DNA from: Phyllobates terribilis
Lineage: Eukaryota
DNA length: 64,000 nucleotides
Direction: 5' to 3'
Assembly: GCF_046119375.1 (NCBI RefSeq)
Contig: NW_027362765.1
Location: 286,192,001-286,256,000, forward strand
Position 1 is the first letter of the stretch, and every line of letters begins with the position of its first letter. A program made the position numbers and the translations under genes. This document shows positions 2,926-37,974 of this stretch, in pieces. Below the pieces are notes generated by a model. That model was not told the origin of the DNA and did not search any database. It was given only the letters and a program-made list of their open reading frames with translations.

Positions 2926-5900
2926 ATGAACCGCTGTGATTCAGAGTCAGAACCTATGGATGTGGAGGAGTCAAATCAGAACATACAGGACAATGTAAGT
3001 AAAATCTTCTGGATGTAAAGTAGGTTAAAGTTCTGCCATTTTGTAAATATTAGGCAAATGCTTTAAGTTATACAATGTATAACAGATATAACATTGGAAA
3101 AAAACTATACAAAAAGCTTGAACAGATGTGATGGAAGGTGTTTGACATACTTTTGCCCATACAGTGTGTATTATAATATTCCCATGACTTTATATATCTA
3201 CAATACCAGCATGTGTAATAAACTCATGGAAATATTATAAATCCCAGAAGAGTTTTATTATCATAAAGATGTACTGCACCCATGATGGTAAAAAACAATG
3301 CAGAAGATATAAACATGCATGTTCCCTGGATGTTAAAGGACAGTAAGTTCAGTAACCTCTACGACGTCATGCACTTGTATGTCCATCGTCTGATTAGGAC
3401 AAATTTATATCTTCTGATAGTAAACAATTAAGGTTCTCGTTCAATGACCACAAACAGAGGTTTAGCAAAACAATAAGTAATAAAGTGTGTGATAAAACGC
3501 TACTACATTTTATTAAGCAATGAATAAGCTTTATTTCCCAATACAAGAAAACCCCTGGAATATAAAACATACAGGTAGAGCTTACATTTCATGTGCTACT
3601 TCATTATTTAGTTTGGTAATTATGTTTTGTTTTACTTAGTAATAGAGCCATTGTTCAGATGTGGTGTGTATTTTGAATGAGGATCAGACTCTGTTCACAC
3701 CAACAATGCCTGATGGGCCCCATTGTCTATAATGGATTCTATTGGGTTTCCATCATATTGCATGTTATTTTACCTGGCATGTTGTGATATTTGTCCTGGT
3801 AAAAACAACAACATTTGTGACAAAGACTCCAAACGCAGCAGTCAGTGCATCCATAAACAGAACTTCACTTTGTTATAATACAACCCTGGACATATCAGAA
3901 CAACTATTATTATTAGGATTATTAGTTGTGTTTCTGTTACTCTCATTTCAGTTCAATAGAAACAGTATGAATATTGATAGAACCATCTCACCCTTGTGGC
4001 GGCTGCACAAACTTTAGGATTTTAATGATGTTTTCAGGATTACTTAAACAGTTGCAGAACAGACTAAAACCGTAATATAACAAACATAGGCATCTCCTTC
4101 AAGGGGGTCCGAAGTCCAACTAAATCCCTATGTATTAGAAAAGAGCTTAGTGCAGATCGCACAGTGCACAGCTCGCAGGGAGGGACACAGCAGGGACAAG
4201 CACAGCCCCTGAAACGAGTGTCACTAATGAAACTTCGTTTCAAGTAGGGGTCAGGGGCTGTGGCAGTGACCTAAGCCTCTGCCCCCTGCTCTGATGACGC
4301 TTCGTTTCAAGTAGGTGTCAGGGGCTGTGGCATTGACCTAAGCCTCTGCCCCCTGCTCTGATGATGCTTCGTTTCAAGTAGGGGTCAGGGGCTGTGGCAG
4401 TCATCTAAGCCTCTGCCCCCTTTTCTGATGACGCTTCGTTTCATCTAGGCGTCTGGGGCTGTGGCAGTGACCTAAGTCACTGCCCCCTGCTCTGATGATG
4501 CTTCGTTTCAAGTAGGGGTCAGGGGCTGTGGCAGTGATCTAAGCCTCTGCCCCCTGCTCTGATGACGTTTCGTTTCAAGTAGGTGTCAGGGGCTGTGGCA
4601 GTGACCTAAGCCTCTGCCCCCTGCTCTGATGATGCTTCGTTTCAAGTAGGGGTCAGGGGCTGTGGCACTGACCTAAGCCTCTGCCCGCTGCTCTGATGAT
4701 GCTTCGTTTCAAGTAGGGGTCAGGGGCTGTGGCAGTCATCTAAGCCTCTGCCCCCTTTTTTGATGACGCTTCGTTTCATCTAGGCGTCTGGGGCTGTGGC
4801 AGTGACCTAAGTCACTGACCCCTGCTCTGATGATGCTTCGTTTCAAGTAGGGGTCAGGGGCTGTGGCAGTGATCTAAGCCTCTGCCCCCTGCTCTGATGA
4901 TGCTTCGTTTCAAGTAGGGGTCAGGGGCTGTGGCAGTGACCTAAGCCTCTGCCCCCTGCTCTGATGATGCTTCGTTTCAAGTAGGGGTCAGGGGCTGTGG
5001 CAGTGACCTAAGCCTCTGCCCCCTGCTCTGATGACGCTTCGTTTCAAGTAGGGGTCAGGGGCTGTGGCAGTGACCTAAGCCTCTGCCCCCTGCTCTGATG
5101 ACGCTTCGTTTCAAGTAGGTGTCAGGGGCTGTGGCAGTGACCTAAGCCTCTGCCCCCTGCTCTGATGATGCTTCGTTTCAAGTAGGTGTCAGGGGCTGTG
5201 GCAGTGACCTAAGCCTCTGCCCCCTGCTCTGATGACGCTTCGTTTCAAGTAGGGGTCAGGGGCTGTGGCAGTGACCTAAGCCTCTGCCCCCTGGTCTGAT
5301 GATGCTTTGTTTCAAGTAGGTGTCAAGGACTGTGGCAGTGGCCTAAGCCTCTGCCCCTTGATCTGATGACGCTTCGTTTCAAGTAGGGGTCAGGGGCTGT
5401 GGCAGTGACCTAAGCCTCAGCCCCCAGCTCTGATGACGCTTTGTTTCAAGTAGGTGTCAGGGGCTGTGGCAGTGACCTAAGCCTCTGCCCCCTGCTCTGA
5501 TGACGCTTCGTTTCAAGTAGGTCTCAGGGGCTGTGGCAGTGACCTAAGCCTCTGCCCCCTGCTCTGATGACGCTTCGTTTCAAGTAGGTCTCAGGGGCTG
5601 TGGCAGTGACCTAAGCCTCTGCCCCCTGCTCTGATGATGCTTCGTTTGAGTATCCCAGGATGCACTGGGATTCTCAAACGAAGCATTATCACAGGAAACA
5701 GGAGAAAAAATATAATAATTAGAAAGTGTAGTTAGGGAATGGTAGGGAATTTTTAATACAAGTATAATAGAAAATAGCTTAGATTATGGCATTAAATAGA
5801 TAGGGATATAGAATGAAATTTAGATTGACTTTCGACTGCCCCTTTAACACTAAAAAGGAAAGTCATTCCCCCTCCTCCTTTGCCCCAGCAATGTAAGGCA

Positions 5901-8900
5901 CATCAGAGAAGTGTGGTGGCTACTCACAGGTCACTACAGTCAGTCACATACATACATGTGATTGGCTGCAGTGCTCATGTAACTTCTTCAAGGGATTTTC
6001 CAGGACCTTGATATTGATTTCCTGTTCTTAGGATAGGATATCAAAACCAGATCAGTGGTCTGAATTCTGGCATCCCCATCAGTCAGTTGATTGAAGGGGC
6101 TTGACAGCCCCTGATGCAATTGTAGATCACCCTTACAATGCGAGTAGATCGCCATATTTGTCATTTTGCTGTTTTAGGCATCTTTGCAGTTGCTTAGGTA
6201 ATCCTGGAGACCTCTTCAATTCTATGCCAGGGGGAGCAATACCCTTAATGATGTATGTGCAGACGGTCTGGAGCCGCTGCAGGTTTGACATTGCGTGTTA
6301 TGCAGCGTCAAACCCGCAACAGCCAGATGTTACAGCATAGTGGATGGGATTTCTAGAAATCCCATGTCCACTATGCGTATCTGGGCACCTGCGGCTCACC
6401 TGCAGAAACTGCCATGCAGCACGTCTTTCAGACCCGCAGCATGTCAATTTCTCTTGCGGGTCCGCATGTGGACTTTCCCCATAGACCTAACCTCTATGAG
6501 GAAAAAAAAAATATGGCGCTGCTCATTTGCATAATGATCGGAAGCCACGCGGCTGTTCCACAGCCTTGGGGCCGCAGGCGGCTTCTGACCGTCCGCACAT
6601 ACCCTAATATGTAGCTCCAATTTATGTTCCTGCTAATCCTTTGTAGATAGTGGTCGATAGTGGACAGGGCAGATTGGGACGTGTTACCTCTAAACTGACC
6701 AAGATAAGCAATTCATAAATATTGCCAATTAGTGCGGTATAGCAGTCAGATACAAAGTGGCATATAGCATCTAGATCATGGATCAGTAATATCTGGCACT
6801 AATGCCACATGGGTCATGTTTACCCAGCACACTGGATAGTGAGCAAATACAACAAAAAAGGATGGTGGCCATTGATCTAGATCAGTGGTCCCCAACCTTT
6901 TTTGCACCAGGGACCGGCTTGAAGCAAGATCATTTTTCCATGGCCCAGCAAGGAGGGGGTGGAGTGGGCGGGGCTTTGGTCATATGGGGGCGGGGTAATG
7001 GAGGGATTTGGAGTTTAGTGCATACTTATCATATAGTGTAGACCAGGTCCCCGCCAGGAGCTATGCCAGGAGCCCCACATAATGTGCTGTGCCAGGAGCC
7101 GCATCACTGAGGCCCCATCACGCCCTGCAGCAGGACAGGGCAGCTGTCCTGACAGCTGCTGTTCAGCTGCATTTACTTCATCCCAGGGGAGGACACAGAC
7201 TGTAGTGGGCCCCTGTGCAAGAAATTTTTTGGGGCCCCCCCCGCCCTTCATAAGGCAACAAAGTTATGTAAACATAACCCCCCCATGTGCATCTCTCACC
7301 CCCCCATGTGCAGCTCACCCCCGTGCATCTCTCATCCCCCTCCGTGCATCTCTCACCCCCCCGTGCATCTCTCATCCACCCCCCGTGCATCTCTCATCCC
7401 CTCCGTGCATCTCTCATCCACTCCCCGTGCATCTCTCATCCCCTCCGTGCATCTCTCATCCCCCCCGTGCATCTCTCATCCACCCCCCATGCATCTCTCA
7501 TCCACCCCCCGTGCATCTCTCATCCACCCCCCGTGCATCTCTCATCCACCCCCCGTGCATCTCTCATCCACCCCCCGTGCATCTCTCATCCCCCCCGTGC
7601 ATCTCTCATCTCTCCCCTCCCTCCCATGTGCATCTCTCCCCTCCCCCCATGTGCATCTCTCCCCTCCCCCCATGTGCATCTCTCATCTCTCCCCTCCCCC
7701 CATGTGGATCTCTCATCTCTCCCCTCCCCCATGTGCATCTCTCATCTCTCCCCTCCCCCATGTGCATCTCTCATCTCTCCCCTCCCCCCCATGTGGATCT
7801 CTCATCTCTCCCCTCCCCCATGTGCATCTCTCATCTCTCCCCTCCCCCCCATGTGGATCTCTCATCTCTCCCCTCCCCCATGTGCATCTCTCATCTCTCC
7901 CCTCCCCCCCATGTGGATCTCTCATCTCTCCCCTCCCCCATGTGCATCTCTCATCTCTCCCCTCCCCCTCATGTGGATCTCTCATCTCTCCCCTCCCCCA
8001 TGTGCATCTCTCATCTCTCCCCTCCCCCCATGTGCATCTCCCATTCCCCCCACTCCTAGTTAATTGTATTTAAAAAAAAATAAAACTTGTTATACTTACC
8101 CCCATGCGATCCCTGCAGAATCCTGGCGCTCGTCCAAATCGCTGACACCAGGTTCTCCTGACTTCCGGCCATGTGACGGCGCCGTCACATGACCGGAAGT
8201 CAGGGGAATCATGAAGGTGCTGCCGCAGCAGCGCAGCGCTAAGATGTCCCGGACCCGGTGCTTAGCATGCGGCCGGGGGCCCCATGAGGAGAGAGACGCA
8301 CAAGAGGGGGGCTCCGAGGGGGCTCCTACCGGCCGGGCCCCATACTGGAGTCAGGGCAGTCATGCCCTGATGGCAGCCCTGCTGGAGGCTGGAGGGGCCC
8401 CCTCTCCCCGCGGACCGGCTGAAAAACCCCAACGGCCCGGTCCTGGTCCACGGACCGGCGGTTGGGGACCTCTGATCTAGATTGTATGATACTATAACTT
8501 AGTTTAGATAAAATCCTATCAGGGCACATACACATCATAGAGAATGGTCCCATTTTGACAGGTAGTGAATCTCCATGTAATACCCATACATATTTGATTT
8601 GGAAAAATTTGCAGTAAGTGTATGTGAGTTTATGTTAGACATAGTAAAACCAAGCCCATATGTTCTATAAGTGACTGTCCTTTGTTCTCCTTCAAAGCAG
8701 AATAACTGTATGGACAACGAAAAGATGGAGAAGAAAAAGTAAGTTTTCTTTGTAAATAAAATTATAACTAGTGGGCAATCCTATGGATCAGAGCAACAAG
8801 GGTTAAATTGTGTTGACTTTTACCGATGCAGTTGTTAGTAAGGAAGAACACACTATGAACTGGGGACTGGGTTATGGGTGCCCAAGGTTTATTGAGACAC

Positions 8901-11900
8901 ATGAGACTCATGGAAAGTGAAGGCTAGCCCATCTTGTAAACATTAAAGGGGTTGTCCAGTGAAAACAAATGATCACATATTTTTTATCACTGTTAAAATG
9001 ACGTGGCAGTGCGCATGCTCAATCGCTGCTCCATTCATTCCCTATGATATTTTTCCCAGCAGTTCCATAGGGAATGAATGGAGTGGCAGCAGGACATAAA
9101 AGTGCCCCGTCAAGGATAAAAATTCCCCATTCTGCTAATCAGTGCGGGTCCCAGCAGTCAAACCCTGGCGATCATTAAAGAAGCACTCCTCCCATCAAAG
9201 TTTTTATCGTCTTAGTATATTGTAATCATCATATTATATAGCATTGTGTAGTTACAATTGCTCATTTTGCCTTTCTACTCAGCTAATTCTTCTCTTTTGT
9301 CTGGTCTATGTAGAAACAGGAAGTCTCTTGTCCCTGCCTTTATCATTTCCCTCTTCAGCTCCTGACCAAGCTGCTCCACTCCTCCCCCTGCCAGGAACCT
9401 TTGCAGTGACGTATGACTCATACAGGGAAAATTGACCTCCTGTTTCTACAAAGAGCTTAAAAGGATTCAGCTAATCAGTTTTTAATCACATGATGTCATA
9501 GACCTAAAGGAAGACAGAAGGATTAGCTTTGTAGAAGGGCAATATGAGCTGTTGTAAGTACACAGTGCTATATAATATGGTGACTGCAATATATTAAGGG
9601 GATAACAATTTTGACCGGAGTGCTTCTTTAAGATATCATCTATCCTTTGGATAGGTGATAAATTATTTTCACTGGATGGCCCCTTTAGCGATGCATGTGA
9701 TTCAATGGCGTCAACACAGAGGGCATTGCAGTTTGATGTGTATGGGGCTGTGAAGCTTTACCTTGTACAATGAATAGGCTTTATTCACTGAAACTGGAAA
9801 ACATAGTTAAAGCTATTAAAGAGGTTGCCCTTTTCAGAAAATTTTGGGTGTGAGCTTTAGTTGTAAAAATAACCCTCCCCCCTTGGGTTCAGCACCCTGA
9901 CCGTCACTGCCCTGGTCTCTGTTTGTCTGCACATCTCTGCAGCTCTGGCAAATTAGAGGACACAAGCTGCTGAGCTCACCGATTGGCTGCAGAGCTGTTA
10001 AAGTGACGTCAGTGCTGCAGACAAACAGGAATCGAGGGCAGTGATGGACAGTACACTGGACCCGGGGAGGAAAAGTAATACTCAGTTTGTTTTTGTTTTT
10101 TTTATCTATTGAAGCTTATAGACAAAAGTTTTTGGAAAGGGAACAACCCCTTTAAGGAGGGGCTCAGCATAGTAGTCACCATTTATGACACTGCAGAGAA
10201 GGGATCAAGTCAGTGTAATCTAAAATATGACTTTTCTCCTCCAGTAAACGCAGAGTGAACAGAGAAAAACAAAGAGAAAACTTAGTGACAAGTGGAAACC
10301 TCTTCATTATCGCCTTTAAGAATCTGCTGCAGAAGGAGAAGGCTACTAAAGAAGTCACGCTTCACTACTTCGAACGGGTACGTGTAATAATATTATGAAT
10401 CTTGGGATATATTAATGGTTAGAAAAAATACTAAACCTCATCTTAATAGAATCATTTATAAGATAATATGGCTGGTAAAAGTAGAAGTGTCATCTATAAC
10501 AACCAATAAGATTCCAACTTTTGGTGAAAGCTGTGATTTGATTGGTTGGTACTGAAAATACTTCCTATTTAAGTGGATTTTATTAAAAAGCTATGTTTTA
10601 TGTATGTATCTTTATGAACAGTAAGACTTGTGAAATCATACAACGTATGCATGCTGTACCATTTATTTGTTCATTTCTCTCACCAGTTCCTGCATTCCAT
10701 CTTCTTTATTGGACATATTAGCATCCCACCAGTCACACCTAGTGAATTCCTTCCTGACGAGAAGATTGACCTATTTAGACGTATTGTACCAAAAGCTTTC
10801 AATGAGTACAACACCCACCTCCCTTATTACACCCCGTACTCCATTTTCCTAGAATATGTAAGTGTGCTTCTTTCATCACTGCTACATCCTTATTTCCTAG
10901 TGTTATAGAATGACTACTACTGCCGGACACAGAGCAGTATTACTCATACATAGCCATATAACGAGCGAAAGCTTTGGACAGTCTTTACTTGTTAGAAAGG
11001 TCCTTCTGTTGGGACCCCCAGGTAACTGCTCTGCACTCTATGAAAAAGATGAGGATCTTTTAACTTAGAATTCTCTAACTAGGCATATGAAAATAGTTTG
11101 TTTCTCCAAACTAGACAAACCCATTAACCATTTCTACAAAATGCATAGCTTAAAAGGTTTCAAGTAACTGAAACCTACCTGGTGGTTACATTTCTACTGA
11201 TAAAATCCAGAGTGCCATTTATTAGATTGCATAATGATAGTTTTCACCTTCTGCTGGTGAAAATTTAACAATTATAGCAATCTCATACAATTTATGTAAA
11301 ATGTAAATTGTAGAAAAGATCATTGTTTGGGATGTTAACACTTGTAAGGAAATCAAAATTACAATTTTAAAACATCCACTCACACACCCATCACCCATAT
11401 AAAGGGTGGGGGGGGGGGTATTATTCTGAATGAACACAAATACAGCTTCTATAGGAGGCAAGTGACAGTTACCGGAAGTGTGCGAGTATGGTTCATCAGG
11501 GAAAAAATCTCCAGCGAAGAAAAGTTAAAAACTTGGATCTTCCTTTATTAGACAAAGATTAAAAATGGTTCAAAAACATGTAGAATTAACCACCAGCTAG
11601 TAATCCCAGTAACGCGTTTCGACTCAATAAGTCTTAACCCCTTTACGACCTTGTCAGTAATAGTCCGTAGCTGCGCCCTGGGCCTATAGGGACAGCTACG
11701 TACTATTACGCGCGATCTTAAATGCGGTCCCGCGACCAAAATCGCGGTGACCGCTGTGAGGTAGCGCGATTGATCATGTTGAGGGGCACTCACGTCACCG
11801 GGTCAATTAAAGCACATATGCAACGTTTTCCGGTAATCTAAAGTCCAGCAGTTTATTACACATCATAAACTGCTTATAACATAGTCCATTTCAGTGGCTC

Positions 11901-14900: not shown

Positions 14901-17900
14901 TCCGACTCCGTACTGTCTCGTACTCTATTGGGTCGTTTGTATGGGCCTCTCAGACCTGAGTTACTGGAGGACTCACTACCTCTAAACCCACGCCAACCAT
15001 CCTCAGGACATCTTGAAAGGTCTCTAACTTCTGTTGTAGCCGTTCTATTATTTGGAGGGCCCTTTCTCTGTTTGGTCTCACAATTTCTAGACGGCTGCCA
15101 TCTTCTGCTGCTCAGGCGACGCTGTCTTTCCATTCGCAGTCTGGCGAGATTCAACTGTTCTACCTCTCGCAGGTAGGTCACTCGGTACTCTATCAGCATT
15201 CGTATATATAAAGATTTTCTTCCATTCCTACAGCGGAGAATGACACCATGCCGTCTTCATCCGGTATCCAGTACTGATGATCACGTGGACTACTTACTTT
15301 CATCACACCAGACTTCTTTACCATCATTTGCATGGCTTGGCCCTTTCTCCCAATGAGCTTTCTTAACAGAGCATGAGGCACCCAGATGACTTCTTCCTGT
15401 AGACTTTGAGCTTTTCTCATAAGCTCCAGTTGTCTAATGGCTTGTTCTGTCTTCAACCGGACAATCCGCTTTGTGCGAACACATCACCAGTGCATGTCAC
15501 TTAGGACAGCCACCCTCTTCACTGTGACTTCGGTTGTGGACAGGACCAGCAGCTGTTTAGCTTTTGAGGTCAAATACACCTTACAGGCTCCCACGGCCTT
15601 CTTAAACTCTTCATGCACTGGCTCTCTGGTACATTCTTCTCTCAAATCTTCAGGTACATCTATGAGGCACTTGTACCGAGAAGTTTCTGTCTCACCAGTG
15701 GTCTCCAAACAATCATCTGGCTCAGGTTTCAGGGACAACTGACTTTCAGATTCTTCATCCTGTATGCTTCCCCTGAGCTGACTCTCAGCTATGAACTCAA
15801 GAATTCTCCTCTTGACAACTTCCATTCCATACTTATCTTCTTTTAACACTTCCTCAGCTCTCTTCAGGTCCACCTTCTCATGGTATAGAGGATTAAGCGC
15901 ACTTGTTTGCCCTTTTCCTTCTCCAAGGCAACCTTGTTCACTGATTGGTACTTTACCAGGCGACCTTTGAGCTCGAAAACTTCTTCCTCTAGCTCAGCTA
16001 CTCGCCTCTCTGTCTCCAATGCTCCGACTCGACTCTCGACAGCCAGTCTCTCAAGCCTCTCTTGCTTCAAATGGGCTTGTAGCGTCTCCTTGATCTCAGC
16101 TCTTACATCCACCGAATCATCCAAGCTCGCATTATTCGAGAAAGTATTTGCTTCATACCTCCTTTCTCCAGTGGCAAACTCCTGACCCTGGTCTGTGGCT
16201 TCTCCGATAGACTCCTCCATCTTTTTCTGCTCAGCTTCCATCTTGCTGATTCTATCCTTAAGGCATGTATTTGCCCTCTGGAGATCATCACAGAACGTCT
16301 TCAGCTCCATCACCTGAGCTTCCAGTCCTAGGATCTTTCTGCGGAGATCATCATTCTCATCACGGGTGTCCTGCAGAGTGGTCTCAATCACTTGGCGCAT
16401 GTGCTCTGCATCCGCCTCATCATTCTCTAGTTTTTTCTTAACCTTGAGGAGATCCTCATAGTCCCTCTTGGTTTGTTGCAGGTCCCTATTGTGTTCATCA
16501 TACTCCTCCTTGGATTCACGCAGCACCCGGTTGAACTGTTCACGCAGAAACTTCGTCCTTCAGCGCCCCTTTTAAGGCAGATAGCTCCCTATCCCGCTGG
16601 TGTAGACCCTCGTCCAGCCTTTGCTTCTCCGGCATCAGCTGCTTCACCTGCTCCTGAAATCTCTGCACTTCCTTTTTTGTGACCTCTGCTTCCTCCGCAT
16701 TCACAGAGTCTTTCTTCACTTGGTTCAGCTCTGACTGCAACAGGGAGAAACGATTTTTCATCTCATTCAGCTCATCTTCAGACTCCTCTTTCTCAAGCTT
16801 CAACTGCAAAATTTGGTTTTGCGGAGGTCCTCTTTATTTTTCTGGAACATTTCCTTCCATTGGTTGATTTCCTCACTGCTTTCCTCCAGTTCTCACTTCA
16901 AGTTCCTCACAACCTGGTTAATTTTCTGCCATTCAGACTCCAGGCTCAGCTGGTCCTGGGACACGTTCTCCATGTTTTTCCTTAGTTGCTGCCTGGCAGG
17001 CTCCAGCTCTTGATCATGATTGGCCACCTCCTCTTCCATCATGATCTCCTCTGCTTCTAAAGGAGGATCCACACTCGGAATAAAGGCACACAGCATTGCA
17101 TTTTCTTTATTGCCGCTGCAGTACACCGCATTAAATTTACGGCGCCATCTTACCTCAGGGTAGATGGCGCTGTCATCCCGGGGGCTGTCGCCGCCCCCCC
17201 CGCACCAGCGATCGCTGTGATTGGCTGTTCAATTCACATCGATCGCACTGCTCATAGCGAGACTGCGAGGTGACAGGGCGGTCACAGGCTTGTGACCTGC
17301 CTGTCACCGCCCCATGACCCCCTGCAGTGTATGTCCAGGTCCCAGCCAGCTCTGATTGGAGCGATCGATGATGACATCGATCGCTCCAATCAGAGTTCTT
17401 GACCATAGGTGATAGGGTGGTCACAGGGCGGTGACCGGCTTGTGGTCCGCCTGTCACCTCCCTGTGACCCCCTGTGGTGCATGCCCAGGTCCCAGCCATC
17501 TTTGATTGGTGCGATTGATGTCATCATCGATCGCACCAGAGTACCTGACCGGGAGGTGACCGAGTGGTGACCGGCCTGTGACCTGGCTGTCACCACCCTA
17601 TCACCCCCCTGTGACTGCCCTGCAGATCCTCACACTTGGTGAGGATTTCTACAGAGCGGTCACGTCTGATCTGCGCTGTGCTGGGCCTTGTAGTGCCACA
17701 GAACCTTCTGTGACACTATAAGACCTTTCTCCCACCTGCTCCGGTGTTCGGTCTTCTGAATCTGCTGCTCCAGTGTCCTGGATCTCCTGCTCCGGTCTAC
17801 TCGGGTCTTCGGTCTCCTGCTGCTGCTGGGCTCTTGCTTCTGATCCTGCTACTGATGCTGCTCCTGCGCCTGCTCTTAATCCTGCTGAAAAAGAACAGAG

Positions 17901-20900
17901 AAGACTTTGGTAAGTCCATCTCTGTTCTCCCCTCATCCACCCCAATCCCCCCTCCCCCCCTCATTTTACCGCCCTCGCCATCCCCTTTTTCTGCCACCGA
18001 GCGCATTTTTTTTTCGTGCATGCTGCAGTAGCCGAGCGCTGACCAGTGACTACAACACTGATCAACGTCTGTGCTCGCTGTTTTCCAGGACTTTTTTTTG
18101 CCACTGTCCACCCACCCCCCACTTTGCACCACCTCCGTGCGTGCATCCAGCAGCCGCTGAACGTTGATCGTTTACGCAAATCACCGATCAGCACTCGCGC
18201 TTGCTACTTTACACTTTTTTTTTTCCACTTTTTTTTTCCACTAACCTTTTTTTTTTGTAGAGGGTGCTGGGCCTTGCAGTGCCACAGAAGCCTGTGATAC
18301 CACAATCGCCGCTCCTGCTACAGAAGATATCTGACAGAAGACAACTGTAAGTAGGATTTTTTGATCAGTCCTCATCCACCCCAATGCCCGTCTCCCCTCT
18401 CCTCCTTCCCATCCGCCTTTCTGCCACCAAGTGCTGATCAATACTTGATCGTTCGACTTTTGTCTTTTTTTTTCGTGCTTTCTGCAGCGGCTGAGCGCTG
18501 ATTAGTGACCACAGATCACTGATCCGCACTTGTGCTCGCAGTCTTACCCTCCCCCTCATTTGCACCACATCTGCATGCACACCCAGCAGCTGCCGAGTTG
18601 ATTGGTGACATAGTTCACCAATCCGCACTCGTGCTCGCTGTTTTCACCACCTACGGTTGTTCCTTTTTTTCCCAGAAAAGAAAAAAAACAAAAGTTCACA
18701 CCAAGCACACTGACACACACAAACTCTAAATAAAGTACACGCAACATATACATAACAAAAAATGTCCCGCTCATCCCAAACTCGCTATTCAGTGGAGGAG
18801 GCATACGCTTTCCTTGCCTCCGACACTGACAGCGAGGATCCCACATTTCTTTACTTTTCTGATTCCTCGTCTTCCTCCTCTTCTTCTTCCTCCTCCTCTT
18901 CCTCTTCAGGTGCTGCTGGACCGCCACGTAGTCGCCCCAGGAGAGAAGATGAGCCAGCGCCCCCCACTACTGACCCCGTATGGACCTCGCCCCCCGAAAA
19001 TTATGAGCCACCGATTCCTGATTTCGCGGCAGAATCAAGAATCAAGTTTGACACTACCAGCCTCACAGAAATGGACTTTTTCAAAGTCTTTCTCTGAGGA
19101 TTTTGTAAACCTCATGGTGGGCCAAACTAATTTGTATGCTCATCAATTTTTGGAACAAAACCCCTCTTCATCATTTTCTAACTCGTCTCCTGTAGACACA
19201 GAAGAAATGATGAAGTTTTTGGGCCTGGTCCTTCATATGGGGATCCTGAAGAAGCTAGAACTTCGGCAATACTGGAGTGTTGAAGTTTTGTATAACACTC
19301 CAGTGTTCCGAATGGTCATGACCCGGAAATGTTTTGAGGCCATCCACAAGTTCTTGCATTACAACGATAATGCTAGGTGTCCTGCACGCGATGAACTGAA
19401 CTTTGATCATCTTTCCAAAGTTCGGACAGTCATCGAGCACTTCAACAATAAGTTTGCTGAAGTGTATGTACCCCAAAGGGACATCTGCGTGGATGAGTCC
19501 TTAATCCATTTTATATAAGGGCGGCTTAGATTACGGCAGTACCTGCACAGTAAAAGGTCCATATACGGAATCAAGCTGTATAAACTTTGTGAGAGTACCT
19601 CAGGGTACTCTCACAAGTTTAGAGTTTATGAAGGGAAGGACTCCCGGATTGAACCCCCTGAATGCCCCCCTGTCCTGGGTGTGAGTGGGAAAATTGTGTG
19701 GGATTTGGCGCATCCACTGCTAGATAAAGGTTATCACCTGTACAGGGATAACTTTTATACAAGTATCCCACTCTTCAAGTCCCTCTCTGCGCGACGTACC
19801 GCAGCCTGCAGTACCGTCCGCAAAAATCAGAGAGGCCTCCCAAAGACGCTAATTGGGCAGCGGCTCAGAAGGGGTGAGAGCAGAGCCCAATGTAGCGACC
19901 ACCTGTTGGTGGTCAAGTACAAGGACAAGAGGGATGTCCTTCTCTTGACCACCATACATGGTGATGGCAGCACCCTCAGCACTGTACGAGGTTCCACTAC
20001 ACAGGTCATCAGACCAGACTGTGTAGTGGGGTACAACAAGTACATGGGGGGAGTTGATCTCTCTGATCAAGTCCTCCAGCCATACAATGCTTTGAGAAAG
20101 GACAAGGTATGGCATAAGAAGCTGGCTGTGCACATCGTTCAGATGGCAATGCACAACGGTTTCCTTCTGTCACAATGTGCAGGCCAGACTTCTACGTCGT
20201 ACCTTCACTTCCAGGAGACAGTTATCAAGGCATTGATATTTGGCAGCAGTGACGGAGTGGGCCCCACTACTTCCAGAACTGAAGGACCTCAAATTGTACC
20301 AGGCCAGCATTGCCCAGGAGAGGTCCCTCAAACAGGAAAAAAAGGTAAGTCACAAAAGAGGTGCAGAGTGTGTTCCAAAAGGGAAATACGCAAGGACACC
20401 ACTTACCAATGCGACACCTGCCTTGACAAACCTGGCCTGTGCATGAAAGAATGCTTCAAAAGGTACCATGCTTCCATGCACTACTAAATTAATTTCTGAC
20501 GTATGACAACCTGACGTACACTACACAACTGACGTAGTGTTCGTCAGGTTGTCCTACACAACTGACGTATAACACTACATTCTAACATTTACAAATCGGG
20601 TATCCGTTCCAAAAAGGGGGCACTTATTGGGCATTTCCACTGTTTACGCACATCAGGGGCTCTGAGAACGTGACATGACGCCCGCAGACCATTCCATCAA
20701 AGTCTGCATTCCAAAGCGTCACTCCTTCCCTTCTGAGCCCTGACGTGCGTCCAAACAGTAGTTTTCTCCAACACATGGGGTATCAGCGTACTCAGGAGGA
20801 ATTGGACAACAGATTTTGAGGTCCACTTTCTCCTGTTACCCTTGTAAAAATATATTTTTTTTTACATTTTTGGGGAAAAAAAATTGTTTTTTTTTATTTT

Positions 20901-23900: not shown

Positions 23901-26714
23901 GGGATCATGCGGTATGGTCTCCCCACTTGCACCAACGTGACGTTCCGCACCACCTGGGGACACGCAAGGTCAGCTTAGCACAGTTTTACACAAACACCTC
24001 CCATCCACATGGGCCCAAGGAGGCACGGGGAGTTAATGTGGCCCATGCAGCCGCTGACGTGGCACCACACTCGCTCACCACCCTGAAAGGGCCCCTTTCA
24101 CTAGCAATAGTTAAACAGAGCCTTGCCAGCCCAGCATAATTGCCACCAGTTCCTCGCTAGATATAAACCCGGTCCGTTAAGATTATATTGGGCCAGAAAC
24201 GAGCCCCGGTAGCATGGGAAGTAAAACAGAGAACACGAACATGTGGATTCGTGGATCAAGATAAAAGGGCAGCCCAAGATTAAATTATATAATCGCCTTA
24301 AGGGCACACTAGACAAAACACTACATACACAACGGTTATACATATACAATGGTCAGATAAGCAAATACAGGAGGTAGAACAAAAAGTATAAGCAGATGAA
24401 ACATGTCAGTTACTGGTCTGATGTTCGACCATGTGAGCTGGACCACAAGGGGCATGGGGTGCCAGCTGTTTCCAGTTCCTTCCAACACATTACACAATGT
24501 GACCCCCCCCCCTTTAGAAGTGAACAGCAAGTATGAGAAGAAGAGAGAGCACAAGGCCTTACACAAGCATTTTACCCCTTTGTCAGTCACTCCCTGTTCC
24601 ACCCCCAAGATGTTTCTAATCCCCCTACCTCTGGGTTTTTGTAGCTAAAACTCCCAAAATCCATGAAGGATCATAACTTCCCAACAAAAGGTCATAGGGG
24701 TGGCGGTTTCGGTGCCATTGGATCTGGCCCCCATTACGATTGGAGACCAAACATGGCTTTGCTACCTGGCTTCTATTAGCTAGAATGGATCGAGACCCTG
24801 GAAGGTGTTCGGTCCGTTCCACAGATCTCAAAAAAGATAACCGGTATACAGTTAGGACATACGATAACTCCATAATCTCCTTATGAAATTCCCATCTGAC
24901 TGAATGAAGCAGTTACACAGGCTGGGCCCCACAGGGGTCATCCTGTCATGAGCCTGGAAAGTAGCTAACCTACTAAACTAAACTGGAGTTAAAAAAAAAA
25001 ATTAATGGAATTAATGAAATTTTTTTTTTTTTAGTTCCAATGTTAGAAGCTTTTGTAAAGCATATGTGAGTCCAAAATGGTGACTATACGCTAAATGAAT
25101 TCCTTCAGGAGTGTAGTTCTAAATTGGGGTTACCTGTGGGGGTGTAAGCCGTTTTGACACCTTACGGGCTCTTCAAATGTGACACGGCATCCGCAATTGT
25201 TCCAGCCAAAATTTACCTCCAAAAGTCAAATAGTGCTCCTTCTATTCTAAAACAGTAGCTTCCAACCATAATATGGGCTACAGTTTTTGGGGGTAATTTT
25301 GTTTCCTGATTACCTTGTGGAAATTAAAAATGTGGTGCTAAAGTAACATTTTAGTGGAAATAATGTAATTTTTCTTTTTTTTTTTCTTCCTGTTTGCATT
25401 AATTCCTATGAAGCACCTGAAGGGTTACCAAACTTTGTGAATGCAGTTTTGAATACCTTGAGGGGTGCAGTTTTCAAAATATGGTCTCGTTTGGTGGTTT
25501 TCTGACATATAGGCAGTGACTTCAAAAATGAAGTGGTCCCAGAAAAAAAATAGGCTTTGTAAATTTCAGTGAAAAAAAATGAAAATTTGGTGTTAAACAG
25601 TTAAAATTTAGTTAAAAATTATGCTGACATAAAGTAGAGATATGGTAAATGTTATTTATTAATTTTGAGTGGTATGACTATCTGGTTTAAGGGCATAAAG
25701 ATTCAAAGTTTTTTCTAAATTTGTCAGATTTCTGATATTTTCATAAAAAATACAAATCATATTGACCTAAATTTACCACTAATAAAGTACAGTGTGTTAT
25801 GAAAAAAAAAAAAAAAGTCTCAGAATCAATGGAATACATAGAAGTATTAGAGAGTTATTACTATATAAAGTGACATTTCTTATTTGAAAAATGTAGGAAG
25901 GGGATTAAGTAAGGCAAATCCCCTCTCACATACTCTGCATGTATGACAAATATGGATTTTTATATTAAATGCATGTTCCTTTTACTTTTCCTTCTAGATG
26001 ACTGAAAGTCTGAAACCAGAAGATCCAGATTTATTCTTGAAAAAACTAGCAGTTATCAATGAGTCACTGTGGAAGGTTACGGACGAGGAAGGAAACCAAC
26101 CCATTGCCAATGATTTTGCCTTAACAGCTTCGGTAGTTACATACTGCTGTGTTAAAGATTCTAGGGATGCAAAAGTTCTTAAGAGAGCTTATGGATCCTC
26201 AATGTCCTGTAAAGGAAAGGCCCAAAGGCAAATAATGATTGCTATATCAACCCTGCATGTGTGGGACAAGGCCATCTCGTATGCAGTGTGTTGTGCTGGT
26301 AAAGGTCTTCCTATAACATTCCCAGAACAAGTACACTGTAATGCCTACAATTTAAAAACCCAAATAGGGGGATATGTGAAAGTCGCTCCATGCACAAAAT
26401 GCAACAAGATGTATATTGTAAAATTCAACCCAGAATACCAAGCACATAACAAGAAGGAGGACTGGATGTATGGAAACTGTGCTGAAAATGAATCGCTCAG
26501 TAGGCTGCTGCAGAGTGACAGAAGTGTGAGGGAAAACATATGTATTATGGGTGATAATGGGGAGACACTGATGAACTGGGAGGATATACAGAATAAGTTT
26601 AATGAAAAATTTGAGGATGAAAAGAAAAAGACACTCAAAAGCCTCCTTTCATCTCGTGGGTTTCAGCTCAGCTCAGGAGAATGGAAGTTGTTCATCCCAT
26701 CTTGCTTACTTTGA
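2926..26714 (+). CDS. Uncharacterised 375-aa protein with permuted Zn-dependent deaminase-like motifs (spliced gene)
   Basis: join(2926..2994,8701..8738,10245..10377,10687..10857,25998..26714) = 1128 nt. All four introns are GT-AG, phases 0/2/0/0 are mutually compatible and there is no internal stop. An in-frame TAG at 2914-2916 precedes the ATG, and a 5'UTR exon ends at 2601. Protein: [11 protein letters not shown]...[18 protein letters not shown]...[16 protein letters not shown]...APCTKC...[16 protein letters not shown]... Confidence 0.85.
4232..5648. repeat. 67-bp GC-rich minisatellite, about 21 copies
   Basis: Unit GCTTCGTTTCAAGTAGGGGTCAGGGGCTGTGGCAGTGACCTAAGCCTCTGCCCCCTGCTCTGATGAT; period 67 (e.g. 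4299 to 4366). The flanks at about 4100 and 5845 resemble degenerate TTAA-MITE ends. Confidence 0.95.
6883..8474. mobile_element. Non-autonomous hAT (Charlie/Buster-like) element with 8-bp TSD
   Basis: 15-bp TIR CAGTGGTCCCCAACC / GGTTGGGGACCTCTG (1 mismatch). Perfect 8-bp TSD ATCTAGAT at 6875-6882 and 8475-8482. Confidence 0.9.
7283..8050. repeat. C-rich minisatellite (about 22-30 bp units, GTGCATCTCTCATC core) inside the hAT element
   Basis: Repeated CCCCGTGCATCTCTCATCCACC grades into CCCCCATGTG(C/G)ATCTCTCATCTCTCCCCT. It accounts for the Pro/His/Ser low-complexity ORFs at 7082-8073. Confidence 0.9.
8947..9684. mobile_element. T2/Kolobok-type MITE with a second MITE (9179..9627) nested at an internal TTAA
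   Basis: Outer element: TTAA|AGGGGTTGTCCAGTG...CACTGGATGGCCCCT|TTAG. Inner element: TTAA|AGAAGCACTCC...GGAGTGCTTCT|TTAA, of the same family as 33399..33825. Confidence 0.75.
11497..11633 (-). mobile_element. Penelope-like pseudo-LTR arm (left arm of an inverted pair)
   Basis: Near reverse complement of 22260..22425. On the minus strand it reads GACTTATTGAGTCGAAACGCGTTA...AATAAA...TTTTTAACTTTTCTTCGCTGGAG, the layout of PLE terminal repeats carrying a hammerhead-type GAAACGCGT motif. Confidence 0.55.
12232..14516. mobile_element. Solo LTR (2285 bp) rich in internal tandem repeats, inserted in the piggyBac
   Basis: TGTTA...TTACA termini and 5-bp TSD ATGAT (12227-12231 and 14517-14521). Internal repeats have periods of 109 bp (x2), 40 bp, 80 bp (about x6) and 51 bp (x3). 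No gag/pol coding sequence. Confidence 0.85.
14750..15735 (-). pseudogene. FXR1: Intronless, diverged FXR1-derived coding fragment (piggyBac cargo) lacking KH1
   Basis: [14 protein letters not shown]...FKKAVGACK...[12 protein letters not shown] resembles FXR1 [14 protein letters not shown]...FKKAVGACR...TVKRVNILSDMH. KH2-like [14 protein letters not shown]...KSGV...EDGMVSF; [15 protein letters not shown]; C-terminal [15 protein letters not shown] resembles FXR1 TESDQTADTDASESH. One TGA (15484-15486) and one TA-repeat slippage (about 15205). Recognised from memory; this is not the host FXR1 locus. Confidence 0.8.
15760..15873 (-). pseudogene. LONP1: Short LONP1-derived coding fragment (piggyBac cargo)
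   Basis: [37 protein letters not shown] resembles LONP1 [37 protein letters not shown], and is fused in frame to the FXR1-like segment. Confidence 0.75.
16150..17035 (-). pseudogene. CGN: Intronless cingulin rod (coiled-coil) derived fragment (piggyBac cargo)
   Basis: [76 protein letters not shown] and [31 protein letters not shown] match the amphibian cingulin rod as I recall it. One stop (16893-16895) and two frameshifts (about 16812 and 16545). Confidence 0.75.
18762..20487 (+). pseudogene. piggyBac PGBD4-like DDD transposase, disrupted
   Basis: Acidic/Ser N-terminus; motifs [19 protein letters not shown] and MGGVD; C-terminal Cys-rich domain CRVC...CDTC...[12 protein letters not shown] frameshift at about 19090 and an in-frame TAA at 19516-19518. 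Confidence 0.9.
20600..21620 (+). repeat. Degenerate ~370-bp tandem subterminal repeats of the piggyBac 3' region
   Basis: TTTCCACTGTTTA(C/G)(G/A)CACATCAGGGGCTCT recurs at about 20635, 20998 and 21377. Confidence 0.75.
22260..22425 (+). mobile_element. Penelope-like pseudo-LTR arm (right arm of the inverted pair)
   Basis: GACTTAAGTCGAAACGCGTTGATGGGA...AATAAAGG...TTTTTAACTTTTCTTCGCTGGAG; inverted copy of 11497..11633. Confidence 0.55.
22690..23330 (-). mobile_element. Probable L1/Tx1 LINE ORF2 3' remnant, heavily decayed
   Basis: Minus-strand translation gives fragments reminiscent of the L1 ORF2 C-terminus (LPKP...HINNQAA; CHVFLTPG; [11 protein letters not shown]) interrupted by stops. The similarity is weak and judged by eye. 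Confidence 0.35.
23380..25880 (+). mobile_element. Second, truncated piggyBac-family 3' region remnant, interrupted by an LTR-like insert (about 23817..24933)
   Basis: Shares the subterminal repeat motifs and 3' end text (GCTGACATAAAGTAGA..., AAGGGCATAAA..., ATAAAGTGACA) of 21.0-22.2 kb. The insert has TGTGG...CCACA ends but no clear TSD. Confidence 0.55.
25998..26714 (+). CDS. Last coding exon of the unnamed gene: putative Zn-binding deaminase-like catalytic domain
   Basis: A polypyrimidine tract with TAG acceptor ends at 25997; phase 0 joins exon 10687..10857. 238 open codons; PCTKC at 26388-26402 and WMYGNCAE at 26463-26486. Confidence 0.85.
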   Translation: MTESLKPEDPDLFLKKLAVINESLWKVTDEEGNQPIANDFALTASVVTYCCVKDSRDAKVLKRAYGSSMSCKGKAQRQIMIAISTLHVWDKAISYAVCCAGKGLPITFPEQVHCNAYNLKTQIGGYVKVAPCTKCNKMYIVKFNPEYQAHNKKEDWMYGNCAENESLSRLLQSDRSVRENICIMGDNGETLMNWEDIQNKFNEKFEDEKKKTLKSLLSSRGFQLSSGEWKLFIPSCLL

Positions 26715-34986: not shown

Positions 34987-36329
34987 TAAATATATATTCC
35001 TTTATCTACAGTGATGTCTTATCTACAGGGCTGACAGACAATATGCACAGTGGTTATATATTAATACTAATTTTAGTTATTCAATTATCATGGACTGCTT
35101 ATTAATAAAGTTCCCCAAGTGTCAAGTAAACACCTAACATTTCCTTTGTAGTCGCAGGTTCTCCTCAACTTCCCCAGTTGTCACAGGAAGACTCCCTCAA
35201 TCTCCCTAGTAATCAGAGAAGTCACAGTCATGCCAGCACAAAGCCTGGAGTTGACACCTAAGTGCCTAATGCTTGGAAGGCAGGAATCATGACACAGTTG
35301 GAACACACAGGTGTACATTTGCGACAAATTTTGCAACTTTTTTCAAGTGTCAAGCGATGAATCAGCCAAAAACATCTGCAAACCCTAAACTCCACCACCA
35401 ATAGCAAACATAAAAAGAGGTGAACACAAAAAAAAAAAACTTTAAAAAAGGTCCAAATTATAAGAATAAGGCTGTGTTCACATGTCCAGTAATCATCAGT
35501 TACAACGGGTCCAGCAGCAATCTGTTAACTAAAAAGTTGTGCAGACAACTTTTTTGTCCAGATAAAAAAAACTAATGTCAAATGGATCAGTTTTGTTTTT
35601 TTTTTTTTACTTTAAAGTCAATGGAAACTGATTTTTTAAATAGCCATCCGTTTTTCTTTTATTTGAAAATGATTGCTTTTTTCACTTACTGGATCAGTTC
35701 CAAAAGGGATAAAAAAGGATGGCTCTTTAACGGATCCATTTTCCATAGACTTCAATGTTAAAAAAAGGATCCAGTTGAAATTACTTTTTGTTTAGCTAGA
35801 GAAAAAAGCAGTGTCTGCACAACTATTTTTGTTAACGGATTGTTCTAAAGTATGATTACTGGACCTGTGAATGTAACCTTAGGTGCCAATTAAAAACAGA
35901 TGAACACCAAAAACTAGACCAAAAGGCACAAATGCAATAATGAATCAAACCCAAAATCTTTATTGTACTCTGGTATACAGATCCTGGATGGTTACATTTA
36001 TGTTGTATTTTCTGGACACCAACATATAGTGAGATCCTTTGGGTTTTGTTCTAGTGTCCTTATTTTAATGCAGAGGTGGGGAATCTCCGGCCAGCGACAT
36101 CCTTTTCTCCAGCCCCCAGGGACCACAGTGCTTGGGCCCTTTAATTGATCCCGATACTGCGAGTACGTGCATGCAGCGTCCACTACTGAACGCTGCAGCA
36201 CATACAATGAATGATTATATTCCAGCACCTCCTGTGATTGATATGTCCCCAGTCCCTCCTGTGATAAAGTGTATATTCTCACAGAGTCTCCTGTGGTGTA
36301 TATATTTCCCCAGCGTCTCCCGTGAGGTA

Positions 36330-37958: not shown

Positions 37959-37974
37959 TATACATATATACACA

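Follow-up and report, generated by a model that had tools for sequence, protein, structure and literature searches.

A vertebrate-wide protein family with a putative deaminase-type zinc site and reversed motif order, represented by a five-exon gene of Phyllobates terribilis

The window, a stretch of 64,000 nucleotides of Phyllobates terribilis DNA, contains a spliced gene whose product carries the two motifs of zinc-dependent deaminases in the opposite order along the chain. Could such a protein be a deaminase, and what else might it be? The reading that we prefer, with a confidence slightly better than even, is that the product is a deaminase-type hydrolase that depends on zinc and is intracellular, belonging to an unnamed family that extends throughout the vertebrates.

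The gene was made up of five GT-AG exons spanning positions 2926-26714 of the + strand, with a product of 375 aa. The exon lengths (69 + 38 + 133 + 171 + 717 = 1128 nt) corresponded to 375 codons and the stop codon. All introns had an AG acceptor, and the donors were GTAAGT or GTACGT. The translated exons matched the database protein P0002, 'uncharacterized protein isoform X2 [Phyllobates terribilis]' (375 aa), at 100%. The uncharacterized five-exon gene described in an initial annotation is real, the peptides quoted there were found in their places, and the numbering of the key residues (C269, C272, C298 and E300) was right. The support for the junctions consisted entirely of concordance with NCBI gene models across many species. 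The features of the gene, all on the + strand, are as follows.

2926..2994, + strand: exon 1, start codon and acidic N-terminus, residues 1-23; exact match to P0002 1-23; donor GTAAGT
8701..8738, + strand: exon 2, residues 24-36, with the last codon split; start of the KKNKRR patch; match to P0002
10245..10377, + strand: exon 3, residues 36-80; remainder of the basic patch and the long N-terminal helix
10687..10857, + strand: exon 4, residues 81-137; conserved helical region carrying LHSIFF and the LPxxTP[YF]S loop
10687-10707, + strand: peptide FLHSIFF
10693-10695, + strand: H83, within LHSIFF; invariant in 38 full-length members of the family
25998..26714, + strand: exon 5, residues 138-375 and stop; end of the helical region and the entire alpha/beta catalytic-type domain (about 176-355)
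26130-26153, + strand: peptide SVVTYCCV
26184-26207, + strand: peptide RAYGSSMS
26205..26216, + strand: S207-C208-K209-G210, N-terminus of helix 211-225; the place of the canonical [HC]xE if the fold is collinear; Cys is common here, and there is no Glu
26385-26402, + strand: peptide APCTKC
26388..26402, + strand: P268-C269-T-K-C272, the PCxxC motif with two proposed Zn ligands, at the N-terminus of helix 270-275; invariant in 102/102 members
26463-26510, + strand: peptide of the GNCAE region (16 residues, letters not shown)
26472..26492, + strand: G296-N297-C298-A299-E300-N-E302, GxCxE-type motif with the proposed Zn ligand C298 and the proposed catalytic Glu E300, at the N-terminus of helix 298-310

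The KKNKRR patch straddles the junction between exons 2 and 3. In the AlphaFold model, residues 1-24 had a pLDDT below 50, so that the N-terminus was predicted to be disordered, and a helix followed at 27-66. H83 occupied a mid-helix position in a separate N-terminal domain. The full-length model had a pLDDT of 83, and the model of the alpha/beta domain reached a pLDDT of 92.9 and a pTM of 0.89. The beta-beta start that had been predicted for the C-terminal exon was reproduced by AlphaFold2 as strands at 183-190 and 197-204. The predicted order of elements was helix, strand, strand, helix, strand, helix (with PCxxC), strand, helix, strand. In two independent AlphaFold2 models, helix 270-275 started straight after P268-C269, and helix 298-310 started at C298 of GNCAE. 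The latter was preceded by a 16-residue loop (282-297), within which there was no conserved His.

A library-wide profile search placed the protein in a family of at least 166 sequence clusters, which has no Pfam domain at the curated threshold and no informative protein name. Members were found in lamprey, sharks, ray-finned fish, lungfish, frogs, turtles, birds and platypus, with large tandem expansions in teleosts. No therian mammal was present among the approximately 60 members with a readable source species. The same search gave no bacterial relatives; all clusters with a readable source or with the family motifs were vertebrate. A search of viruses produced two pattern matches, neither of which was confirmed. 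The fish proteins with FLHxxFF, RTPFS, PPCxxC and WPYGNCAE that the initial annotation had mentioned turned up as family members. Searches of the literature on the motif, on permuted deaminases and on vertebrate US22 with deaminase yielded no description of the family, and it is not mentioned in a survey of metazoan AADs (PMC5889660).

Conservation was concentrated at the proposed site. P268, C269, C272, G296, C298, A299 and E300 were invariant in 102/102 diverse members, as the proposal of three Cys ligands and a Glu had predicted, and N297 and E302 were retained in 99/102 and 98/102, respectively. As the mean column identity across these members was 18%, the invariance of seven motif residues is far beyond chance. 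That exactly three Cys were invariant, together with a Glu at the position C+2, suggested the pattern of a catalytic deaminase rather than that of a structural site with four ligands. C208 and C251 were also considered as Zn ligands, because they are invariant in frogs, and were rejected, because they are Cys in only 62/102 and 73/102 members (C208 is replaced by Thr in 18/102). In the N-terminal region, H83 and the residues P126, P130 and S132 were invariant in all 38 diverse full-length members; the last three are the invariant positions of the LPxxTP[YF]S loop in exon 4. The C-terminal elements of the family were poorly conserved.

The deaminase superfamily (CDA fold) is defined by [H/C/D]xE at a core helix (PMC5889660), and in the frog protein C298-A299-E300 started helix 298-310. 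The other element, CxnC (usually PCxxC) before or at the start of a core helix, was provided by P268-C269-xx-C272. The canonical order along the chain, namely [HC]xE on helix 2, strand 3 and PCxxC on helix 3, was not that of the family. PCTKC lies 25 residues ahead of GNCAE in the frog protein, and wherever a member had both motifs, PCxxC came first, with a spacing of 18-35 residues (mostly 21-29). To our knowledge, all described deaminase clades have the canonical order as a defining feature, and the family violates it.

Two registers would accommodate the models equally well. In the first, the motif helices would have exchanged roles, with PCxxC on helix 2 and CxE on helix 3. In the second, PCxxC would remain on helix 3, the site on helix 2 would have decayed to S-C-K-G, and CxE would have moved to helix 4. 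The second, collinear register was favored by weak hhalign alignments of the family profile to TadA and E. coli Cdd; only the TadA alignment, and not that with Cdd, put the GNCAE helix on helix 4. In the alignment with TadA (P = 0.022), 127 columns were collinear and PCxxC fell on PCxxC, the TadA profile being shallow and made from close enterobacterial sequences only. In that with E. coli Cdd (P = 0.07), YYGASMS fell on YFGANME, and PCxxC on PCGHC. A simple circular permutation was rejected: in the frog model the two motifs are separated by about 25 residues and one 3-residue strand, too little for strands 4, 5, 1 and 2 and helix 1. The original proposal of a permuted Zn-deaminase was supported by the reversal of the motifs relative to the YwqJ profile and by their location at helix N-termini; permutation itself did not follow, since the collinear register with a relocated CxE fits too.

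Sequence comparisons pointed to deaminases at low significance. Searches of Pfam, NCBIfam and PDB sequences gave no hit at a curated or significant threshold, and a profile search of the PDB with the family alignment found no deaminase. The frog protein or the frog alignment by itself gave nothing usable against Pfam, PDB sequences or PDB profiles. When the members were scanned individually against Pfam, PF14431 (YwqJ-deaminase) was matched by 31 of 102, with a best E of 3.3e-4, the members being related and the matches not independent tests. No printed score reached the gathering cutoff of 25.9 bits, the highest being 17.9 bits (E 0.0037). No other Pfam family was matched by more than 2 of the 102, and APOBEC and dCMP_cyt_deam were matched by none. 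The likeness to YwqJ-type CAE deaminases pointed out in the initial annotation was borne out to this extent, sub-threshold PF14431 being the only recurrent family-level similarity. In these matches, the PCxxC region aligned to profile positions 116-132 and the GNCAE region to 61-99, which is the swapped order. In NCBIfam, two cytidine deaminase models came out on top (2 members each, best E 0.0023), tied with two unrelated models. The similarity to YwqJ, which is borne by two short motifs, could be convergent. On the whole, the frog protein is probably a previously undescribed deaminase-like variant and a good candidate for a nucleic-acid-editing enzyme.

The PCxxC region also showed a weak likeness to C2H2-type zinc knuckles, which raised the possibility of a non-catalytic zinc module. 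C269, C272 and C298 would then bind zinc with a fourth ligand, either H83 or a carboxylate (E300 or E302), and the protein would serve as an adaptor for nucleic acid or for a protein, such as a US22-like partner. The invariant H83 could fill the role of the fourth ligand, the region matched C2H2/C2HC fingers (PF22995, E 0.02; Kaiso, E 0.3), and no enzyme gave a significant structural match. However, the finger matches were insignificant and spanned only PCxxCxxxF, whereas 31 of the 102 members matched the deaminase profile. The invariant G296, A299 and E300 around C298 resemble the GxCxE/CAE helix of deaminases and not a structural knuckle (PMC3239186). Furthermore, no exchange between Cys and His was seen in 102 sequences, although structural sites usually tolerate such exchange. 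We consider the non-catalytic module unlikely.

The initial annotation had proposed a Foldseek comparison with deaminase folds. This comparison went against the proposal, in that no significant deaminase neighbor was found for the domain model (pLDDT 93); against PDB and BFVD nothing had an E below 0.07 or a TM above approximately 0.2 to 0.3. The full-length model likewise gave no hit with an E below 0.07. Among the insignificant hits of the domain model, TadA ranked 4 and 22, and JAB/MPN ranked 33, 48 and 49. The insignificant top hits of the full-length model included APOBEC1 and ADAR, and in a further list a viral dCMP deaminase ranked 3, again insignificantly. If the models represent a deaminase fold, it is a strongly remodeled one.

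USP catalytic domains were also found among the insignificant hits of the full-length model. This raised the alternative of a thiol hydrolase or transferase (a peptidase, deamidase or isopeptidase), in which C298 would be the nucleophile, N297 would form the oxyanion hole, H83 would act as the general base, and PCxxC would be structural or redox-active. The Cys at the N-terminus of a helix, directly after G-N, is placed as a nucleophile would be, and both N297 (99/102) and H83 are conserved. We also take the GNC motif to be reminiscent of the OTU and USP Cys boxes. On the other hand, the USP hits had E values of at least 0.7 and TM values of at most 0.14, and no peptidase family emerged from Pfam and NCBIfam scans of the 102 members. 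In papain-like folds the corresponding residue is on a strand that faces the Cys helix, whereas H83 is a mid-helix residue of the other domain. Moreover, the invariant Glu at C+2 and the invariant PCxxC would be left unexplained, whereas a Zn-deaminase site explains both. A thiol enzyme is very unlikely in our estimate.

We compared the proposed deaminase with the described groups. YwqJ-like deaminases (PF14431) belong to the C-terminal-hairpin division and are toxin domains of bacterial polymorphic toxin systems. Gx[CH]xE is the stated helix-2 signature of this clade (PMC3239186 Table 1), and in the family the corresponding G296-N-C298-A-E300 was invariant. Further likenesses were the combination of a GxCxE helix, contributing a Cys ligand, with PCxxC, a long insert ahead of the CxE helix, the poor conservation of C-terminal elements, and the genomic coupling to a gene of the SUKH superfamily. 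The family differed from YwqJ in that PCxxC comes first along the chain, and in having a conserved helical domain at its N-terminus that includes an invariant His. It is vertebrate and intracellular, without secretion or toxin-delivery domains, its partner is of the US22/SUKH-5 type and not SUKH3 or Imm6, and no bacterial intermediates were found.

In its predicted order of elements, the family was collinear with the helix-4 division, which contains TadA/ADAT2, dCMP deaminase, AID/APOBEC and ADAR (PMC5889660), and a role in vertebrate immune conflict, as in that division, is plausible. Unlike the division, however, it has no [HC]xE on helix 2, where a non-invariant S-C-K-G is found instead, and CxE lies on the following helix. 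It also departed from the AID/APOBEC-like pattern, as its ligand motif is CxE and not HxE and is placed after PCxxC. With CDA/Cdd it shares the CAE-type motif with three Cys ligands, but the motif order is different, the ribose-binding N-x-E of CDA is missing, the protein is considerably larger, with an additional helical domain, and the similarity was insignificant.

The genomic surroundings provided evidence of another kind. In all six non-frog loci examined, which came from a chimaera, four teleosts and a turtle, a US22 (PF02393) gene or exon lay less than 10 kb away on the same strand. It lay upstream in the turtle and the teleosts, and downstream in the chimaera. In the piranha, the order was US22, family gene, US22 and a further 334-aa gene, and US22 has apparently been duplicated along with the family gene. 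In a toothfish and a sturgeon, the family protein and US22 were fused in one gene model. In the frogs, tblastn detected no US22-like gene in the 64,000-nt window, and around the Bufo bufo orthologue no US22 was called up to a distance of 10 kb.

Bacterial deaminase toxins, those of the YwqJ clade included, have SUKH proteins as their predicted immunity partners (PMC3239186 Table 1; PMC3113570); for the YwqJ clade, SUKH3 and Imm6 are listed (PMC3239186). The neighbor in the six non-frog loci is of the US22/SUKH-5 group. As in the bacterial pairs of deaminase toxin and SUKH, there are two genes on the same strand, fused in some gene models. In contrast to them, the vertebrate genes are spliced, lie kilobases apart and vary in order, and the partner is a putative inhibitor.

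The family also included fusions to N-terminal zf-CCCH_3 domains, which exceeded the Pfam cutoff in five cases (two from sharks and one each from lungfish, bichir and mormyrid) and scored exactly at it in a bowfin protein. The CCCH-bearing members form one old branch. CCCH zinc fingers are usually RNA-binding.

These associations bear on a further alternative, in which the protein would be a Zn enzyme of the wider deaminase-like fold acting on something other than a base, such as a nucleotide, ADP-ribose or a small metabolite, or acting in reverse as an aminating enzyme. The evidence from motifs and context is the same as for a deaminase, JAB/MPN was among the top, insignificant Foldseek hits, and the remodeled pocket, with its N-terminal cap, H83 and E302, leaves the choice of substrate wide. 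JAB, Tm1506 and DYW:KP relatives illustrate that the deaminase-like fold supports other chemistries. Nevertheless, the CCCH fusions and the SUKH-type partner both suggest a macromolecular nucleic-acid target, and the combination of CxE with PCxxC is peculiar to the deaminase branch and sets it apart from JAB (PMC5889660). We regard this alternative as highly improbable.

For the deaminase-type hydrolase that we prefer, we propose the following mechanism. C269 and C272 of PCxxC and C298 of GNCAE would together hold one Zn ion. The ion would activate a water molecule, and E300 would shuttle the proton, the task that the [HC]xE Glu performs in cytidine and adenosine deaminases. In either register, the motif helices would flank one parallel strand, which should bring their N-termini together at one edge of the sheet. 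The N-terminal helical region, which contains the LPxxTP[YF]S loop and H83, probably forms a cap over the pocket or completes it. The substrate is likely to be a base in a nucleic acid. RNA would be the most likely one, because the old sister branch carries N-terminal CCCH zinc fingers, which are usually RNA-binding. Outside the frogs, the US22/SUKH-5 partner may bind and restrain the enzyme, in analogy to the SUKH immunity proteins that accompany bacterial deaminase toxins. Such restraint would suit a role in conflict or antiviral defense.

A broader scheme, which we put forward as quite unlikely, is that of an ancient two-gene conflict module of vertebrates, in which a deaminase-like effector with a rebuilt site is paired with a restraining US22/SUKH-5 protein. 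The effector would edit viral or cellular RNA, guided by CCCH fingers in some paralogues, and viral US22 proteins would be captured host inhibitors that serve to disarm this effector. The arrangement was present at the one chimaera locus examined, in teleosts and in a turtle. By our own estimate, the module would presumably be more than 400 Myr old. US22-family genes occur in herpes-, irido-, pox- and adenoviruses.

If the family is composed of active deaminases, it would constitute a vertebrate nucleic-acid-editing family outside AID/APOBEC, ADAR and ADAT, extending from lamprey to platypus. It would also mean that a deaminase zinc site can be reassembled from halves that sit on different helices, which is of interest for enzyme evolution, and it would offer a new scaffold for base editors. 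The US22/SUKH pairing leads to a testable idea on the roles of cellular US22-like genes and the targets of viral US22 families. If the site is non-catalytic, the family would still represent an ancient protein of vertebrates, unannotated and highly conserved, and no relative of its confidently predicted fold has been solved.

Two minor observations concern the gene itself. A match to 'RTPFS' at 10835-10849 was rejected as a coincidence, because it is in another reading frame of exon 4; the motif of the frog is YTPYS. Isoform X4 (P0001) used an alternative exon-2 acceptor 3 nt upstream (8698), which added one Gln (DNQNNC in P0001 vs DNNNC in P0002 at the start of exon 2), and exon 4 was skipped in it.

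The frog gene was reconstructed by mapping its 375-aa product (P0002, isoform X2 of P. terribilis) onto the window. This gave five exons, as many as in the initial annotation:

Exon 1: 2926-2994, plus strand
Exon 2: 8701-8738, plus strand
Exon 3: 10245-10377, plus strand
Exon 4: 10687-10857, plus strand
Exon 5: 25998-26714, plus strand

The exons sum to 1128 nt, which is 375 codons and the stop, and every intron has an AG acceptor and a GTAAGT or GTACGT donor. The peptides quoted earlier were all found at the positions assigned to them, which confirms the initial observation. The last-exon ORF (25998-26714) was 100% identical to two P. terribilis database proteins, each named 'uncharacterized protein', in keeping with the label first given to the gene. 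The KKNKRR patch straddles the junction between exons 2 and 3.

Another annotated isoform, P0001 (isoform X4), is 319 aa long and lacks exon 4. Its exon 2 acceptor lies 3 nt upstream (8698-8701), adding one Gln relative to P0002. Isoform X4, which could be a regulatory or inactive form, loses both the TP[YF]S loop and the invariant H83 with exon 4 (10687-10857). The string RTPFS, the fish form of the family motif, was also found at 10835-10849, roughly where the frog form YTPYS is encoded. It lies in another frame of exon 4 and was rejected as a non-coding coincidence.

A word-indexed search with the frog protein gave frog orthologues only. A profile built from 19 frog proteins, searched against 1.84 billion representatives, gave 166 clusters (60 with E below 1e-30), with members in the following groups:

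Jawless and cartilaginous fish: sea lamprey, chimaera, sharks
Non-teleost ray-finned fish: bichir, sturgeon, paddlefish, gar, bowfin
Teleosts: many species, with frequent tandem paralogues
Lungfish and tetrapods: lungfish, many frogs, turtles, ducks, gamebirds, platypus

No therian mammal was present among the approximately 60 members with a readable source species. Because the gene is conserved, an artefact was excluded. All named members are 'uncharacterised' or 'hypothetical', except one model labelled 'interaptin-like', and none carries a precomputed Pfam domain. The literature searches turned up no account of the family, and neither a Pfam family nor an informative name was found for it.

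In a quick tree, the frog gene grouped with those of turtles and birds. Every member with an N-terminal CCCH zinc-finger domain fell in a second old clade, and a third clade was a large teleost expansion.

Conservation was assessed in 102 C-terminal domains with a mean column identity of 18%. P268, C269, C272, G296, C298, A299 and E300 were invariant, including all four residues singled out in the initial annotation as the Zn ligands and catalytic Glu (C269, C272, C298 and E300). N297 (99/102), E302 (98/102), S305 (98/102), W226 (99/102) and V234 (99/102) were near-invariant, as were G203 and S205. C208 and C251 were Cys in 62 and 73 of the 102 domains, respectively, and both were invariant within frogs. 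Among 38 full-length members, H83 (in LHSIFF) and P126, P130 and S132 (in LPxxTP[YF]S) were invariant.

The family-wide signature therefore consists of one His, three Cys and, two residues past the third Cys, a Glu. A catalytic deaminase Zn site, which has three ligands plus a proton shuttle, has this composition; a four-ligand structural site does not. A non-catalytic structural zinc module is unlikely. A thiol hydrolase using C298, itself among the invariant residues, we consider distinctly improbable.

Each of the 102 domains was scanned singly against Pfam. PF14431 (YwqJ-like deaminase) was matched by 31 domains (best E 3.3e-4), with all scores shown under the gathering cutoff; every other Pfam family was matched by at most two members. 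The match came in two pieces, the PPCxxC region on profile positions 116-132 and the GNCAE helix on 61-99. The two motifs thus run in reverse of their order in the YwqJ profile, as originally proposed. The helix-2 signature of the YwqJ clade is GxCxE (PMC3239186). In an NCBIfam scan no family was matched by more than two members; among the families that reached two were a pair of cytidine deaminase models, with a best E of 0.0023, tied with two unrelated models.

AlphaFold2 models were built for the full-length protein with the frog alignment (pLDDT 83, pTM 0.84) and, from 102 sequences, for the isolated C-terminal domain (pLDDT 92.9, pTM 0.89). Residues 1-24 were predicted to be disordered and 27-162 helical. 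The C-terminal domain was predicted as follows:

176-180: helix
183-190: strand
197-204: strand
211-236: helices, S-C-K-G at start
249-257: strand
262-266: strand
270-275: helix, PCxxC at start
279-281: strand
282-297: loop
298-317: helices, GNCAE at start
319-321: strand
327-330: strand
331-355: helices

PCxxC and GNCAE each open a helix, and the two helices flank one strand. In a parallel beta-alpha-beta-alpha unit the N-termini of both helices would meet at one sheet edge, as happens with helices 2 and 3 of deaminases. Foldseek, proposed earlier as a check against deaminase folds, found no significant neighbour of the models in PDB or BFVD. Deaminase-fold proteins (TadA, APOBEC1, ADAR, viral dCMP deaminase and JAB/MPN) recurred in all three top lists, at E 0.085 to about 2 and TM-scores of at most about 0.2. 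This recurrence is no more than suggestive.

The canonical deaminase order is helix1-strand1-strand2-helix2-strand3-helix3-strand4-(helix4)-strand5 (PMC3239186, PMC5889660). The predicted elements match it in two registers. In register A, the swap of the initial annotation, strands 249-257 and 262-266 would be strands 1 and 2, the PCxxC helix would be helix 2, the GNCAE helix would be helix 3, and strands 319-321 and 327-330 would form a YwqJ/CDA-like C-terminal hairpin. In the collinear register B, strands 183-190 and 197-204 would be strands 1 and 2, helices 211-236 would be helix 2 with S-C-K-G replacing [HC]xE at its start, and the PCxxC and GNCAE helices would be canonical helix 3 and helix 4. 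In hhalign, the family profile aligned in register B both with TadA (P = 0.022 over 127 columns, from a shallow TadA profile) and with E. coli Cdd (P = 0.07); both placed PCxxC on PCxxC, the values being weak and the motif itself the anchor.

The permuted deaminase is supported in part: the order is opposite to the YwqJ profile and register A fits, but register B fits too and was the one chosen by hhalign. PCxxC and GNCAE are joined by too short a linker for a plain circular permutation to be likely. The Zn site is non-canonical in either register. A deaminase-like scaffold with some other chemistry seems improbable to us. Because it fails on motif order and every significance threshold, the protein was not filed as a deaminase member. 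The closest known kinds are the YwqJ/CDA-type and helix-4 deaminases, and the protein is probably a new variant of the deaminase kind.

At all six readable non-frog loci (L001-L006), the family gene has a US22-like gene or exon (PF02393, SUKH superfamily) less than 10 kb away in the same orientation:

Dissostichus (toothfish): US22-like and family gene fused in the gene model
Stegastes: three US22-like copies
Sander: US22-like detected by tblastn, gene not called there
Pygocentrus (piranha): US22, family gene, US22, then another gene of 334 aa
Chrysemys: US22-like upstream
Callorhinchus: US22-like downstream

A sturgeon gene model showed the fusion too. SUKH proteins are predicted to serve as immunity proteins for the nuclease and deaminase toxins of bacteria, the YwqJ clade included (PMC3113570, PMC3239186). 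The US22-like group is reported in herpes-, irido-, pox- and adenoviruses and, in cells, in amphioxus, salmon, a ranid frog and platypus (PMC3113570), a cellular range resembling that of the family. The linkage lends independent contextual support to a toxin-like enzyme held in check by a protein inhibitor. For the frog gene the pairing is unproven, because the window, in which 2.9 kb is all that precedes the start codon, showed no US22-like partner, and the Bufo bufo orthologue has no called gene within 10 kb.

Taken together, we lean towards a Zn-dependent deaminase-type hydrolase acting on nucleic acid, probably RNA. C269, C272 and C298 would be the Zn ligands and E300 the proton shuttle, and the US22/SUKH partner would regulate the enzyme in at least many lineages.

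CCCH fingers of the zf-CCCH_3 kind usually bind RNA. Outside frogs, an N-terminal zf-CCCH_3 domain (PF15663) recurs in the family: it scored above the Pfam cutoff in five family proteins (two sharks, lungfish, bichir and mormyrid) and exactly at it in the bowfin protein. These carriers (P0035, P0037, P0044, P0045, P0051 and P0057) form an old paralogous branch. A short isoform with this domain is named 'ZC3H11A-like' by NCBI.

Other features were noted in the introns and elsewhere in the window:

4224-5647 and 7082-8073, intron 1: 67-bp tandem array with copies 92-96% alike; Pro/Cys/His/Ser-rich simple repeat with all three forward frames open for about 1 kb
12560-14250, minus strand, intron 4: near-identical 58-aa ORFs in 80-bp steps (13605, 13685, 13765, 13845), a non-coding tandem repeat
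14678-17126, minus strand, intron 4: successive ORFs in differing frames with an FMRP KH0 domain (E 1e-18), a coiled-coil stretch upstream and weak matches to KH_1 and the FXR C-terminus; resembles an FMR1/FXR-like retrocopy or exon cluster with broken frames, opposite in strand to the family gene
18814-19518 and 19681-20487, plus strand, intron 4: piggyBac-type transposase split in two ORFs (DDE_Tnp_1_7, E 1e-30 per half) with a zf-Tnp_2 finger; an insertion, probably decayed
36328-37972 and 56441-58080: inverted 1.65-kb pair, 95.6% identity, with Tc1/mariner-like transposase fragments inside
47881-49363 and 54567-56049: duplicated 1483-bp segment, 100% identity, spacing 6686 bp
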